DNA from: Zygnema circumcarinatum SAG 698-1b
Lineage: Eukaryota; Plantae; Zygnematophyceae
Assembly (NCBI GenBank): GCA_037447605.1
Contig: CM074810.1
Span: 62,001 to 126,000, forward strand
Reading direction: 5' to 3'
Length of the DNA: 64,000 bases
The notes under the pieces are model-generated. The model did not search any database. It worked only from the letters and a program-made list of their open reading frames with translations, and was not told where the DNA came from. The translations under genes were made by a program, and so were the position numbers. Positions 43,181-52,923 of the stretch are shown one piece after another; the stretch's first letter is position 1, and each line of letters begins with the position of its first letter.

Positions 43181-44642
43181 GCGCGCTGCTCCGTGCAGAG
43201 GCCCATTCTTTGTAAATTGCTTAGCCCTCTCAGCCCGACCTAAAGCTCAGCGCAGCTGCGGCATGCTCCACGCGTCTGCCTCGTTTGGCGCAAATAGAAT
43301 GATCAACGTGTCTTAGGTAGTCAATTTTGCAAAGATGCTAAGGAGGTGGCGTGGACTGTGTGGCTTAGTCAACCGGTTTCCTATTAAGTCCTTATCGAGT
43401 ATCAATTACATCAAAAAGCTTTCCCTTTGCCAAATCACTTTCCGTGCACTTTTCGTGATGTCTCTCCTCCTTTCTCTGCTTCGTCTGCTGCTCTTGGGGC
43501 GGATGCTTAGCTGCAACTAGCCGCACTGTGACGGATGTGATCACCTTGTCGGCCTGGATGTTTACCTGTGGGTCTACGCGATGTTCTGAACCCATGCTCG
43601 TATTTGAGGGTATGTTTTGTTCCGTTGGAAGGCCATGAGTGCTCTTGGACTCCCGGCTCTATTTTGTGAATGTGGTGGGATTCCAATTTCGTGAAAATGC
43701 TTCTCCAACAGCTGGGCATCTTCTGGCCTGTGTCTGTTATCATGCGAGGGAACTGTGCTGTTAAAAATGAATAAAGGATACGTGAGAGCTTGGGAATTCA
43801 ATTGAAAATCTTTCAACAGAATGTCGACAGAAGAATTCAGGTATATACCCAACAGTGAGTACGTATCTGAATATCAGAAAGTTGGATGTCTCAACTCCTG
43901 CAAGCATTAATCTGGAGTACGAGAAAAGAATCTGACAACTGTCCTGAAATTGCGCCATGCAAGCGCTCGTCACTCTGCATAACACACTCAGTCAGCATGC
44001 TTTGAACATGCGAGACAGCAAATTTCCGGATGGCGTAAGTGTTCTGGCTAAGGCGTGAGCATGACACGTCACATTTCCCTCTCAGGAAGGATCTTGGATT
44101 GTGAAATATCTTACTTACATTAACCCATCTCAGTCATGTGCCTCCGCTGTTATTGCTCTGAAAGGGCCGACTCCGCCAGTCGTAAAATAGTCCACTTATC
44201 ATCTCTATTCCTGGGCATCCGGCGCTTCCAGGTTTGATTCAGAAAATCAAACTGCTCGTAGGGCCATCCGCTCTTGAGCAATATGTCACACTCTAAGCAG
44301 ACAGGGAGTAGATGTTCCCAAACCCAAGAACAAAGTATAGCCACTCCGCTGTGTCCATTATTGGCCCAACACCCAGAACGCATCACATGACAATTTACCA
44401 TCGTTCCTTAGAGAAACGGTCATGCCCTCATCACTCGAGCAAGTGTCAGTGCGGCTCATCTGCCATACCATGTCCTACTAGTCGACCGACCGACCAAACC
44501 CTTTCCGCCTATGGCAGTGCCCACACACGAGGAGCACCCCTTCTTGAGAGAACACGTGTGCGATCGAGCAGCCTCCTCCCTGCTATGAATACCACCCCTT
44601 AACGCCTTGCCTGCACTGCAGACTAGACTGCCCCCTAAGCCC

Positions 44643-47600
44643 TCACTCGGGTGTGCTTGACTGAATATCGTACCCTAAGTAGTCAGCAATCACTCTTGAG
44701 GCGAGCCTGGAAGCGCTAATACCCTCCTCCTTGGCAGCGCCCTGCAGCCTGTCCGCCAGCAGCCTGTCCACCACAAGGCGAGGAAGGGCAGGGCGGCGAG
44801 GGCTTGCAGCCTTCGCAAAGGCCTGACGGGGGGTCTTGTAAGAGGAAGTGAACTCTCGGAGGGCGTCAAACCCCTGTACACACATCGAACATCAAATTCT
44901 CCTTTAAAACCTAAGCTGCGGCCTTCCGATAAAGCTTGGGTGTCATGGGCAAAATGAAAAGAAAGAAGGCGATCAATAAATTGGTGCCAGGTTTGCTTTC
45001 TAGAACGGCATTCTGAGCTCAGACTCATGTCAGTTAGATTGAAGAACACTTCTCCCCTGCTGCAGATTCCCTCAAAGGAGTGGGTCATGACGTACCACAC
45101 GAGTCGCAAAGTCTCCGAAGCTTTCGCCCTTGGAGCGTTGCAATCTCCACATGCAAAAGAGGGGTTCCAGTGTTGTCTCCATATCCTGAATCTTCATCTT
45201 TTCCATATACACTTCAGCCAGACGGGTCTGGTTTGCAGAGCCTCCTATCCACAACTGCCACAAACCAGCAAAGTATCGAGCAAAAATACAAGATTGAGTA
45301 CAAAAGTTGGAAACTTTCTGGATGCAATGATAGACTATGGAGTTTCGCGCAATAAGCTGTCAGCAACTTGCCGCCTGCAAATTCTTCGAGGTACTTTGGA
45401 CACAGAATTTAGCGCTTTATGTGCAGATGAGAAATCTCAACAGCCACCACTGAAGTGACTGTCCACGGAGCCCCATTCCGTGGACCTGCTGCAGTTTGCA
45501 TTTACAGTCAAGCACCGTGGCGATTGCCCAGAGTATATTTCTCTACTCATGTAACAGACCCCGATAAGTATCATTAGAATTCACTAGAGGCAGTATTGTA
45601 CCTGATAGCTGTTCGCACCATCGCCAACAAAGCCAAGCTCTGCCATGTATGGACGCGCGCAGCCATTTGGGCATCCTGTCATTCTCACAACAATTGTTTC
45701 TGAAGACTTCCGAAGTCCCACCTGCAGGGTAACCAGCCAGTCCAGTCAATCACTATTGATCAGTCACACAGTGAGGCAGATACACTTGTTATTTACTGGA
45801 TGAATTGCAAAAACAGTCACATGTACACCCAAAGCCATCTTCTTTCCTACGTGCATTAGCTGCTTCTCGAAAATCTCAATAGCACAGCTTCAGGGCAGAA
45901 ATGCCAAAGTTGAACGACGCACTCGTTGTAATGTTACGATCAACAAAAAAGAATGCCGGTATGACTTTAGTGAAGAACTCTACATTGCCAAATTAAACTA
46001 TCGGTTCAAGAGACAGAGGAGTGGAAAAATGGAATGTATGTTCACCTTCTCCATGACTCCCCGAATGCGCTTCAGCACATTGGGCATAGTCCTTTCTGCC
46101 TCCGTGATTGCGAGTCCACAGAGCGGCAGAGCAGGACAAGCCATGCCGGTGATGTTCAGAGGGTCGACATACTGTGCCCCCTGTCAATAAGACAAAGAGG
46201 GAGCCAAGAAAAGGAAAACACATTACGCTTCCTGCTAAACAGTTATCTACTCGGGTATGAAACACGACACAGAGTATACATTGCTCTGCTCAATAAACAG
46301 CAAGAAAAACAACTTCAAAGTCCCACTTTCAACAGACTAACAAGATAAGAAATTCTGGGAATGCAAAAATTCGGTGACCTTCTCATGTGATGTACACAAA
46401 ACACGTGCTTCTAGGTGTAGTTCATTCTGGCTTAGTAAAGAAAACCGCTAGTCAACGCATCTGGGCCGAAATGCCCTTTAACCTTATGCATCATTTCCTT
46501 TTTTCAAACCAGCCAATCCGTCCCACCTCCCTCCCCCCTGGTGAAAATTAGCTATATTTTCTCAGAAAATGAAAGGGAGCAGCGGGAAAGATGTGGCTGG
46601 AAGCGCACGGGTAAACGAGATCCCACCAAAATGCCGACAGGAGCAAGGGTCTTCGTGATCCGAGACCGCCACGCACGTCTAATGTCGCAAAGAACTAAAT
46701 TCTGGTTAGCTGAAATCCTGACCGGAAGGTTGTACTTCTCAATGACCTCTCTCAACGCCTTCTTCACATCCCCCTTAATCCGACCATTGTCTATATGCAA
46801 CCCATAAAACAACTTCCCATCACCCTGTTCGCCCCATCCCACATACGGCTTAAACTCCCAAGGGGGCAGCTCCTTGAATTCCTCAAACTTCTTCCCGTAA
46901 TACTCTTCCGTCACCGTGCGAAACTTTTCGAGGCCCCATTCATGGATGAGGTACTTCATGCGAGCCTGCTCATAGAACGAGCCAAAGAAGCAAGAAAAGT
47001 ACAAGGCCAACACCCAAGAAGGGGAAGGGAGGAAAGACAAAAATTCAATGAGTGACAAACAAGAAAGAAAGTCACAGGCCCTGAACTCAAATTCTGAATG
47101 CGAAAACGACCAGCGAATCAACTCCTATTCGGTCCTTCGCACAACGCTTGAAGATGCAAACAAAAACCAAATCGATAGATAGATCCTTGTCCTTGCAATT
47201 CAACTGTGTCCAGTTCTCCGCTACGCAACCGCTTGACGCCCAACAGTCTTCCTACTTCCTCCTCCATTGGTTTGACTCCACTGCCTTGAAGTCAATGACA
47301 ATCAGTGAGCTGTTGTGGCCCTCTAGTATATTTGTAAACTGCGTCCTTACAAATTCGCCTAACTGCTCAGTTGTAATGATGCAAAAAAAAAAATCAATTG
47401 CACCCCTTCCCCCTCCCTCCTCTCCCCTTCCCCCTTCCCCCCATCCCCTCTCATCTCCGCTTCCTGCTACCGCTTCTGCAAGTCCAAGCCATTAGGAGCA
47501 GCAAAGCTCACCTGCCTACGGTCATCGCGACGACCATAGTCGCGCTGCGTGGCCACAATGGCCTTTACAGCATAAAGAATATCATCCTTGGGTACATATC

Positions 47601-50600
47601 CAAAGGGCTGAGCCACGGCTGCAAATGTGGTTTCATTCCGATGCGTACGACCCATGCCACCTCCCACCTGAGCCAAGCAGCAAAGCTGTCTGTTAGGACG
47701 AGCTGCCGACATGCAGGGTGGGTCAGACCAATGTTGAGATACGACAAACGTAAAGTCAGGCCAAGTAGTAGTAAGTAGTAGTAGTAGTCCAAAACATTAC
47801 TCCCTTGGGGGCCCCCAGATAGTTTGAGTGGTAGTTCAACAAAAGCACACGATAACTACGAATAGAGAAAAGTGAACTCAATATGGGACGAGGTAGGAAA
47901 ATGTCAATGGGGATCCGGCAGGCAGACAGAGCTAACATGAGAAGCGGGAGCGGGGGGTGGCAAGGGGGCAGTGAGAAAAACTCACATAGATGTTAAACCC
48001 TTCCAGTTCTCCTGACTCGTTGCACATAACCACAAGTCCGACATCATTTGTGAGAAGGTCAACTGAATTGTCCCCGGGAACAGTGATCGCCATCTTGAAT
48101 TTTCGGGGAAGATATTGGGTACCGTAAATGGGTTCCGGAGACCCTTCAAAATTGGTCCCAAATCTGTTGTCCATGCGGGCTTCAGTCACATCCTTTGGCT
48201 CTGCACTCATCACCTGAACCACTAGCAAAAAATTGCTAAATGAAGGTCAATTTTCTACTTTCAGGCAAAATTGCCACCAACCTTCCTTCAGATTGAAACA
48301 TAGTCACTCTTTCTCTCAGTAAAAGAGGTCCCACCATTCATGTGGAATGTAATGCGACAAGTTTCTCTCCCAGACACCCGTACACCTACGACTGTAACTC
48401 ATTTGTTACCAACGGCAATCCACGTCGCCCACAGCAGCCACACATTTGGGCCTCCAGGTGGACTAAGTGTACATTCATCTTCTACCACACGCATAGCCCT
48501 CCATCCTTCTCGCATCAGATCTTCATCGAATGACCTAATAAACTGAAAATTGTGAACAATTTCAATAGCCACTTACCCGCTCACCATCAAGCCACACGTC
48601 ATAGTAAGCTCCGGCTTGTGGAGCTAACAGTTCGGCAATTTTATCCGCGTACTCCTGGGCATAATTGTATTCCGGCTTATTTGTGAAGGGTGCAACCGGT
48701 GCCAGGATGTTTCGATTAAGGTCTCCGCATGCTCCCAAAGTAGAGCCCATATTACGAATTACCGTACTAAAGACTGTCTTCATGTTGCCCTTCAGAATTC
48801 CATGCAACTGAGACAAAACACAAAAAAACGAACAATAAAATGACAATGAATAACTATCCAGCGGGCTGCCCATCTAAGCTTGCGTTCATTCGAGTAGTTG
48901 ATCAATTCACAGGAAACATTCTATCTCCAGAACTTGCAGGCCTCATGCGCTTCGCTGGCAGGAACGCTACCTGAAACGTCTGTCGCGTTGTGAGGCGAAG
49001 AGTTCCATTTCCATATTTGTCCGCCAAATCATCCATGGTCTTGTAGAGCTGATTGTCCACTTTCCCTCCCGGCTGCCATACAAGGATAGGACATTGACAG
49101 TAAAAGTGAAAGAGAGATACGAGAGAGAAAGAGCGAGAGGGTGAGACACCGATAATCATCGTGCCAATTATACGAAAGCTCATGAAGAACAGGTATCGCG
49201 ATAAAGAATAGAAGTAAACATGTCGAAATCGCGATAGGTTTATCACATGAGCTGGCCGTCTATGTTGTGTGATAGTTAACGTAGTTCAAGATTGCAAATT
49301 CTCTGAACTGAATGTCAAGAAAAGAAAATGGCCGTGATCTATGTGCATACCTGTCTTGTCCTCATCATAAACTGGTATGCTCTCTGTCCTGGTTTGCGCT
49401 CCTCGCGATCCTCCTGCTGATAACTACCGTGGAACTTGATAAGCTGCAACCGCACCTCCAAGGATACGTCAGTTTGAATCAATAAAAGGGCCAGTACAAC
49501 ACCAGCTTATCCTTCATTAGCAAACATAAAAGTGGTTTTTCAAAGCCACTGTAGCAAAATGACATAACGATCGCGGGAGAGAGGAAGCTATGAGACAATC
49601 ATCAATACAGCATTGTTATATGGAAAAAATAAGCTAGAGATTAGGTAAAAGGAGTGGGAAATTATACATGAGCAGCGTCAGCAAGCAATAGGTAAGCAAT
49701 GATCGACAAAACGAACAAAGTTCTCAGCATGCTTCATTATGAAATAAGCTGACACGGTGGATCAAAATACCAAAATGGTCATGCTTACAGGCGTACAGGC
49801 CAAAGACAGCTAATACACGATGGGCACGCTACCAATCTAAAGTGAATTTAAATCCGCAAAAAACACTGAATAAGGGCCTTCACAAGAACGAACAAACAGA
49901 GAGGTAAACTTGTATTTCGAGTCCCTAAATGAGCTCCTGAATGCAGCGGCTCTCGTCACCTGTTCTGCTGCCGCATTGACGTTGTCAGCAGGGCTTGCAA
50001 GCTCCTCCATGAGGGGAAAACGCAGGAAGTTGCTCTCCTCTTTAAAGACCTCCACTCTGCTGCGCTTGGCGGGCACAGTTATGGGGGGGCGGACGGGCTG
50101 CTTCAAAACAACGGTCCATTGTCAGCACTCGGCGTCGAGCATCATCAGCGCGCCGCGTGACAACTCGACCGTGACAAAACCTTAGATTTATGAATTTTTT
50201 TTAGGACGTTTAAGGACAGATAGCAAGGCCAAGCCTTTTCAAGTTCAGCTTCCAGCGACTGTAAAGAGCAAGCGAGGTTCGGCTTCGAATCTAGCTTGAT
50301 CCACTTGAATTGTATCGGAGAACATAAATTGTTATCGTGGTTGTCCATGTTTGAACAAAAGAGCATACTATTTTAATGGTTTCCAATAAGCCAGAAGCGA
50401 CAACCGCTACCGAAATTCGTGCGTGTACTATAGAGCTCGGAGAATAAGTACACAGCACAAACGAAATATTTTCGCTTGCTAACACGTGCAAAAGCGAGAA
50501 GGTGAATAATTCAGGCCATTTGAGCCAGAAATCAATGTTTGGATCAACATGGATACTAATTTGCAGAGCCTATATGACACTTTACAGCTGGGATACTCTG

Positions 50601-50843
50601 AGCTCAAAGGCAACTCAGCCGGCAACACCATAGAAGAGTAAGCAGGCGAAAAAAAAGCAGTACCGTTGAAACAGCTTGAACCGGGATGACGCTTCGAGCC
50701 AAGGACGACGAGCACAGCATCGCCTCCGAGGACAGGAAGGTGGCTTTTCCGAAAAACTCAGAGTCAGAAGGAAGGCCCCCGCCGCCGCGCAGGCCCTGGA
50801 CGGCGTTTAGCCGCGCAGTTGCCGCGTGCATGGCCATGGCCAT
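44643..50843 (-). CDS. SIR: Ferredoxin-dependent sulfite reductase, plastid, ~703 aa, with a C-terminal extension
   Basis: Exons 50843-50664, 50097-49960, 49443-49351, 49072-48971, 48807-48577, 48213-47986, 47667-47512, 46965-46627, 46180-46046, 45721-45602, 45254-45096, 44873-44643 (all phase 0, 2112 nt). Motifs [62 protein letters not shown], and siroheme/4Fe-4S ligands MACPALPLC and [10 protein letters not shown]. Confidence 0.97.
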
Positions 50844-51278: not shown

Positions 51279-51488
51279 GCATGGCATGGCATGGCATGGC
51301 ATAGCATGGCATGGCATGGCATGGCATAGCATGGCATGGCATGGCATGGCATAGCATGGCATAGCATGGCATGGCATGGCATGGCATAGCATGGCATAGC
51401 ATGGCATGGCATGGCATAGCATGGCATGGCATGGCATGGCATAGCATGGCATGGCATGGCATGGCATAGCATGGCATGGCATGGCATG
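51279..51488 (+). repeat. (GCATG/GCATA)n pentamer array upstream of SiR
   Basis: About 42 units; reads (CCATG)n on the SiR sense strand. Confidence 0.95.
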
Positions 51489-52258: not shown

Positions 52259-52525
52259 GGCCATGCCATGCCATGCCGTGCCATGCCATGCCGTGCCGTG
52301 CCATGCCATGCCATGCCATGCCGTGCCATGCCATGCCGTGCCATGCCGTGCGGTGCCATGCCGTGCCATGCCGTGCGGTGCCATGCCGTGCCATGCCGTG
52401 CGGTGCCATGCCGTGCCATGCCGTGCGGTGCCATGCCGTGCCATGCCGTGCCATGCCGTGCGGTGCCATGGCGTGCCATGGCGTGCCGAGCCGTGCCATG
52501 CCGTGCCATGCCATGCCATGCCATG
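52259..52525 (+). repeat. (CCATG/CCGTG)n pentamer array upstream of DGD1
   Basis: About 53 units with CGGTG variants; inverted relative to the 51279-51488 array. Confidence 0.95.
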
Positions 52526-52923
52526 CGTTCCCCCGCAGCCCAGATCCGTGAGATCTTCGGATCCCGCACTCGCGGCGGGCAGGCCCCCCGCGGGCCCGCC
52601 CTGCCTCCCGCACGTGCGAGGAATGCCCCCGATTCGCGCAGGCCGCGCGGCTTCATATCGCGCCGCGTGTCCCGCCACGCGTGCGAGGCCGCGGAGGAGG
52701 GCGCCGGGGAGAGGACGCCTGCCCCTCTTTCTGCTCACACGGCTGCGACGGACACGCGGCGGACGGGCAAGAGGGCGAGGACTAGGGCTGCACCCGATCT
52801 CTCCCGCTCCTGCAGACGGGCCCTTGCTGCTCCTGCAAGTGGTGAGAGAGAGGACGGGGGGAAGGGAGGGATAGGCGGGTTGGGAGAGGGAAGGGGGAAG
52901 AAAAGGGAAGTTGGGAGGGGGGG

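Follow-up and report, generated by a model that had tools for sequence, protein, structure and literature searches.

A probable ribbon-helix-helix module of cyanobacterial descent at the C-terminus of the plastid sulfite reductase of Zygnema circumcarinatum

Ribbon-helix-helix modules in regulators and in enzymes

In ribbon-helix-helix (RHH) proteins, two chains intertwine, and the strands at their N-termini pair into an antiparallel sheet that inserts into the major groove of DNA, where alternate strand residues contact the bases. A G-x-S/T/N turn between the two helices is typical of these structures. Members that stand alone (CopG, Arc, ORF56, AvtR, ParG and MazE/CopA) are small autonomous dimers that act on sequence-specific operators. 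The C-terminal tail of the sulfite reductase (SiR) described here has the order strand-helix-turn-helix in common with them, together with the hydrophobic pattern and the G-x-S turn, but in this case the module forms the end of a 70-kDa enzyme, and its strand has atypical residues on the outward-facing side. In PutA, too, a metabolic redox enzyme is joined to a DNA-binding RHH module, which is the best structural match to the tail. However, the PutA module lies at the N-terminus and acts as a transcriptional repressor on defined put operators, to which it binds, and its identity to the tail is ~20%.

The closest described counterpart is found in SiR itself. A conserved 'C-terminally encoded peptide' (CEP) of ~50 aa was reported in nucleoid-type SiRs, predicted to form a bacterial RHH motif and homology-modelled on CopG (1B01) (Kobayashi et al., 2016; Genome Biol Evol 8:1459; PMC4898807). 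The peptide occurs in SiRs of plants other than grasses and brassicas, was also detected in cyanobacterial and red-algal SiRs, and was proposed to have arrived with the gene of the endosymbiont. When the bean CEP was placed on the tail-less Arabidopsis enzyme (AtSiR+PvCEP), SiR moved from the stroma to nucleoids, the peptide thus being sufficient for targeting. The same paper cites the presence of SiR in chloroplast nucleoids of Physcomitrella. However, cyanobacterial SiR and the SiR of Cyanidioschyzon are not nucleoid-associated, despite the CEPs detected among cyanobacterial and red-algal SiRs, and maize SiR is of the non-nucleoid type, without the tail (PMC4898807). Maize had been listed with pea and soybean in an earlier note on this locus, made from the sequence alone, among the species whose SiR doubles as a nucleoid protein; by this classification of maize SiR, that grouping is inexact. 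The statement that Arabidopsis SiR ends right after the catalytic domain agrees with the published primers, whose translation gives …TYKGVSQ for the end of AtSiR and PSRHNLK for the start of the bean tail.

The tail of Zygnema resembles the CEP in belonging to the same enzyme, in its position after the catalytic domain, in its length of ~50 aa and in its predicted RHH fold. This likeness to land-plant CEPs rests on the description in the paper, and sequence homology was measured against cyanobacterial tails. The architecture, the RHH reading, the CopG template, the sufficiency for nucleoid targeting and the cyanobacterial origin were already published in 2016, and the suspicion in the earlier note that such a tail might not be wholly new was well founded, the CEP having been described in plant SiRs. 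Streptophyte algae are not covered in the text of PMC4898807, charophyte SiR is not discussed in a companion paper on nucleoid evolution, and a full-text search for 'sulfite reductase' together with 'ribbon-helix-helix' returned PMC4898807 as the sole paper on the subject. What the present locus contributes is an expressed example from one more genome, with strand residues that deviate from those of its relatives.

The sulfite reductase gene and its last exon

The gene lies on the minus strand of the window, the whole 64-kb stretch of DNA that was analysed and to which all coordinates refer. Its coding sequence (50843..44643) comprises 12 exons and encodes 703 aa. In the order of transcription, the exons occupy 50664-50843, 49960-50097, 49351-49443, 48971-49072, 48577-48807, 47986-48213, 47512-47667, 46627-46965, 46046-46180, 45602-45721, 45096-45254 and 44643-44873, the last one with a TGA stop codon at 44645-44643. 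Joined, they give 2112 nt with zero internal stops. Ten introns were set by spliced transcript contigs from four runs, with skipped lengths of 163-546 nt, and the first intron by the loose end of a contig at 50098, which maps to 50665. All introns are of the GT..AG kind (CT..AC on the plus strand), and 11/11 are in phase 0.

The product begins with a Ser/Ala-rich leader, similar to a plastid transit peptide, and both siroheme/4Fe-4S Cys motifs, CPALPLC and CPNGC, are found in the spliced protein. Four exons match the NCBIfam model for ferredoxin-dependent SiR (TIGR02042) at 64-162 bits each, with CysI and NirA always lower, and exon 11 ends at position 569 of the 581 in this model. Compared with the PDB, exon 8 matches maize SiR (5h8v) at 1.9e-47 and nitrite reductases at ~1e-6 (NiR, 2.4e-6). 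The gene is a nuclear gene for the plastid ferredoxin-dependent sulfite reductase. A second SiR copy was looked for within the window and none was found.

The last intron (44874..45095, minus strand) has 222 nt, runs from GT to AG in phase 0 and ends in the acceptor ...tgtgtgtacag, followed at 44873 by the opening of the last exon, GGGTTTGAC. It precedes the last 12 codons of the catalytic domain instead of marking the domain boundary. Given this position inside the domain, the tail is not a separately shuffled exon. The last exon specifies the final 12 residues of the catalytic domain and then 64 more, namely a linker of 17 residues, a module of 37 and 10 C-terminal residues.

Use of this exon was followed in transcript contigs over 44300-50200 from four public runs (X1, X2, X3 and X7; three studies with the same organism label). 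The joint between 44873 and 45096 is present in spliced contigs of all four runs, at a depth of 556-1072, and the same contigs pass the stop codon into a 3' UTR of at least 800 nt (43825..44642, minus strand, with an approximate far end, as the contigs continue for ~475-600 nt beyond 44300). Contigs retaining the last intron have a depth of 5 or less at this place. The deep joint in every run and the rarity of these contigs place the tail in the main mRNA. The alternative, that the exon lies outside this mRNA through mis-annotation or an alternative 3' end, found no support in the data and has a practically negligible chance of being correct, being contradicted by the joint in 4/4 runs, by its depth and by the contigs that run through the stop codon. 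The earlier note had made its case depend on the appearance of the exon 44873-44643 in RNA-seq, and the exon is used in all four runs.

Within the exon, residues are numbered here from its first codon, and all elements are on the minus strand. The final 12 catalytic residues (44838..44873) are conserved in cyanobacterial SiRs, with G1 nearly invariant and Y12 invariant. They are followed by the basic, Pro/Ala-rich linker of 17 residues (44787..44837), which varies in length and sequence among cyanobacterial tails and is modelled with a pLDDT of ~71. Its basic residues are K13, R16, K21, R26 and R27, of which R26 and R27 stand just upstream of the strand. The predicted RHH ribbon strand, LPRLVVD (44766..44786), has an extended conformation, without helix, in the model built on the alignment. 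Helix A, with 14 residues (44724..44765), corresponds to a modelled helix at 37-50 with a pLDDT of 89-96 and aligns to helix A of RHH chains. The inter-helix turn, G51-I52-S53 (44715..44723), was read from the sequence. Helix B (44658..44714) has 13 residues and is extended to residue 72 by the model (helix 54-72), and the reading frame closes with the last four codons, STPE, and the TGA (44643..44657). The earlier note had put the module at 44676-44786; this interval is exactly codons L30-L66 of the last exon, and its sequence had been transcribed correctly.

Homology and fold of the tail

Bacterial relatives of SiR were fetched with the conserved exon 47986-48213 as query. Of the cyanobacterial SiR ORFs, 63 are complete at the 3' end, and 47 of these have a homologous tail, which sits directly after the same GF(D/E)ALR.F..Y motif as in Zygnema, while SiR homologues from other bacterial phyla have the tail in 0/11 cases. 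That the tail is common in cyanobacteria, though not universal, and absent in the 11 other bacterial homologues adds to the 2016 account. In an alignment of 33 sequences (the Zygnema tail plus 32 cyanobacterial tails), the Zygnema tail is gap-free across the module and shares R32, L43, L66 and the G-x-S turn, with a top identity to a cyanobacterial tail of 15/37 residues (41%). R32 is invariant (33/33). The turn columns of the cyanobacterial tails hold Gly in 23/32 and Ser in 21/32, and Y65 and L66 in helix B agree with the consensus YL of these tails. An HMM built from the cyanobacterial tails alone gives the Zygnema last-exon ORF 18.6 bits (E 2.4e-4). As controls, 2000 shuffled versions of the tail reached at most 8.8 bits, and the remaining 960 stop-to-stop segments of the window at most 5.7 bits. 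Judged on sequence, the resemblance to cyanobacterial SiR tails exceeds chance.

In broader searches the tail stands apart. The 76-aa Zygnema tail gave 0 matches at E <= 0.001 among 1.84 billion representative proteins, a search that is weak on absence, the query being short, the library huge and the representatives possibly tail-less. This result indicates that the sequence is divergent. A word-index search with the same 76 aa returned four candidates, none of them significant, under a length filter that leaves out full-length SiRs, and an exact look-up of the 80-aa last-exon ORF returned no record.

The distribution of the tail also bears on the age of the fusion. The homologous tails in 47/63 cyanobacterial SiRs place the fusion of SiR and tail before plastids and not only before land plants, and the published account agrees (PMC4898807). 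The earlier note had dated the fusion to before land plants, which is correct but understated. The source, a streptophyte alga, provides an expected intermediate that links cyanobacteria or red algae with land plants.

The assignment of the tail to the RHH class is indirect at the level of sequence. Alone, the Zygnema tail scores 13-14 bits against Pfam RHH_5, the curated cutoff being 26, and phmmer of the lone tail against the PDB found no match. Among the 33 aligned tails, however, 19 match Pfam RHH_1 (best E 1e-6) and 18 match RHH_5 (best E 1.7e-8), and there are additional matches to RHH_3, ParG, FitA-like and antitoxin RHH families. Compared with the PDB, the joint profile of the alignment matches mainly RHH proteins, with AvtR (5e-5), ORF56 (1e-3) and ParG (1.8e-3), as well as 56B, CopG-family regulators, CopG, E73, the PutA RHH domain and omega; the few matches outside the class are designed proteins and weak rows. 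Membership of the Zygnema tail is therefore a matter of transitive homology, as the lone tail is below the Pfam cutoff and its relatives match RHH families.

Structure prediction points the same way. From the single sequence, AlphaFold predicts helices at 32-50 and 54-66 with a pLDDT of 85-93, the strand being run into helix A, and a Foldseek search with this model already has RHH proteins heading the list, at E >2. The alignment-based monomer has a pLDDT of 83 and comprises an extended segment (21-36) and helices at 37-50 and 54-72 (pLDDT 84-96). The resulting order of strand, helix A, tight turn and helix B is the RHH topology, in a model of the monomer only, in which the strand cannot pair. 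With this model the top of the Foldseek list consists almost entirely of RHH proteins; the E-values are 0.25 or higher, and the TM-scores normalised to the target are ~0.7-0.8 for ORF56, CopG, most Arc chains, PutA and StnY. VIA-align lists 50 rows, almost every one an RHH protein (Z 3.3-5.2), and its top alignments span the complete RHH domain, led by PutA (Z 5.2, 48/48) and CopA_SO (Z 5.1, rmsd 1.6, 45/45). Modest values of Foldseek E and of Z are expected for a domain of 45 residues, and a Z below 8 can mean a common arrangement; weight was accordingly put on the uniformity of the list and on the coverage of full domains. In a language-model comparison, the tail has as neighbours the HicB and RHH_1 clusters and one largely cyanobacterial RHH_5 cluster.

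With regard to both identity and fold, we are highly confident that the tail is the ~45-residue RHH module of the SiR CEP, and the evidence from profiles, homology and fold supports the proposal in the earlier note of a CopG-like RHH tail on SiR. The RHH likeness could otherwise be a chance pattern in a low-complexity, Ala/Arg/Leu-rich extension without a defined fold, as the sub-threshold Pfam match of the lone tail and the empty representative and word searches might suggest. Such a pattern is very improbable, however. In position and by profile the tail is homologous to cyanobacterial tails, which in their own right give significant RHH matches; the shuffles fall well short of the observed score; and two helices are confidently predicted even without an alignment.

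Possible nucleoid association and the deviating strand

Overall, the best explanation of the locus, and a likely one, is a plastid SiR with the known CEP as an RHH module of cyanobacterial descent. The ~45-residue module would have come down, along with the enzyme, from the cyanobacterium that gave rise to plastids. Two SiR tails may pair through their N-terminal LPRLVV strands and place a two-stranded sheet in the DNA major groove, and a SiR dimer mediated by the tails could then hold the enzyme on plastid DNA, with the basic linker before the strand helping. By extension from the AtSiR+PvCEP experiment, the tail would tether SiR to plastid nucleoids. A metabolic enzyme with a prokaryotic DNA-binding module able to tether it to plastid DNA would be a moonlighting architecture, recovered here from raw sequence. 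We see about even chances that the tail mediates nucleoid association in Zygnema. The presence of a tail does not establish a nucleoid role, given the tail-bearing cyanobacterial and Cyanidioschyzon lineages in which SiR is not nucleoid-associated, and the description of the Zygnema enzyme in the earlier note as both enzyme and nucleoid protein is plausible.

Alternatively, the RHH tail may not anchor the enzyme to nucleoids here and may instead be a dimerisation module or a sequence-specific regulator similar to PutA, with bulk nucleoid association in some land plants being a later use of the same module. Besides the lineages just named, this rather unlikely possibility is favoured by the PutA RHH domain as best structural match and by the loss of one of two conserved strand arginines in the Zygnema tail. 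However, we know of no operator, target or regulatory phenotype for any SiR, and plastid sulfur-assimilation genes are nuclear, leaving a loop like that of PutA without an obvious target. The bean tail is moreover sufficient for relocalisation to nucleoids, and SiR is found in the chloroplast nucleoids of Physcomitrella (PMC4898807).

The strand and both helices of the Zygnema tail differ from those of its cyanobacterial relatives at otherwise conserved positions. The strand reads LPRLVV in Zygnema, RHNLK in the bean CEP (from the primer) and RHR[VI]x[VL] in cyanobacteria. Of the RxR strand motif, Zygnema has lost the first Arg, a residue shared by 30/32 cyanobacterial tails, and has Leu (L30) instead; the second strand position, His or Tyr in cyanobacterial tails, is Pro. 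In helix A, a position that is Tyr or Phe in 32/32 cyanobacterial tails is Ala, and in helix B a position that is Ala in 31/32 is Val. These substitutions may weaken or re-tune DNA binding. Besides L30 and the invariant R32, the next outward positions of the strand would be V34 and D36. If R32 corresponds to Arc Q9, the outward positions would be R-V-D, which are poor for base contacts.

The loss of the first RxR arginine and of the helix-A aromatic, with the RHH fold kept, could also mean that the Zygnema tail is intermediate or altered in form and acts in dimerisation or regulation more than as a DNA clamp, although we regard this as unlikely. If true, nucleoid anchoring in land plants would have been acquired or re-tuned later, and the ancestral role in cyanobacteria might have been similar to that of PutA.

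Tail loss and replacement among bacterial sulfite reductases

The ribbon-helix-helix (RHH) tail that follows the catalytic domain of the Zygnema ferredoxin-dependent sulfite reductase (SiR) has no RHH-like counterpart in 15 cyanobacterial SiR genes, found in Chamaesiphon and in a group of MAGs belonging to the Synechococcales (loci L004, L005, L007-L010, L033, L037, L039-L041, L059, L061, L062 and L065). In most of these proteins the chain stops where the catalytic domain does, with ...IRAAVGY or ...IREVCKH as the last residues. The tail has therefore been lost within cyanobacteria too. In one cyanobacterium-like MAG (L006:4144-4500), the RHH module is replaced by a different tail of 119 residues, which is rich in Gln, Ala and Lys and resembles a coiled coil. 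Outside cyanobacteria, the RHH tail was found in none of the 11 SiR homologues from other bacteria (L070-L080), whose sources were Leptospiraceae, Myxococcota, Acidobacteriota, Planctomycetota, Binataceae and Betaproteobacteria.

Introns of the Zygnema SiR gene

The introns of the 12-exon SiR gene are unusually uniform in phase, all 11 (window 44874-50663) being in phase 0. Contigs from the public RNA runs also cover intron sequence, including 45255-45601, 46181-46626 and 46966-47511 among others, but these contigs have a depth of only 2-40, compared with roughly 200-2300 in most spliced exon bins. Such low-depth coverage is consistent with a small quantity of unspliced precursor, or of DNA, within the RNA libraries.

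Repeat arrays upstream of the gene

Two related repeat arrays lie upstream of the SiR start: a long array of the pentanucleotide (GCATG)n, with 42 copies (window 51279-51488), and an array of the GCCATGCCAT type, with ~27 copies (window 52260-52526). The 'MAWHG' open reading frames seen on both strands in this upstream region are spurious, being a product of these arrays.
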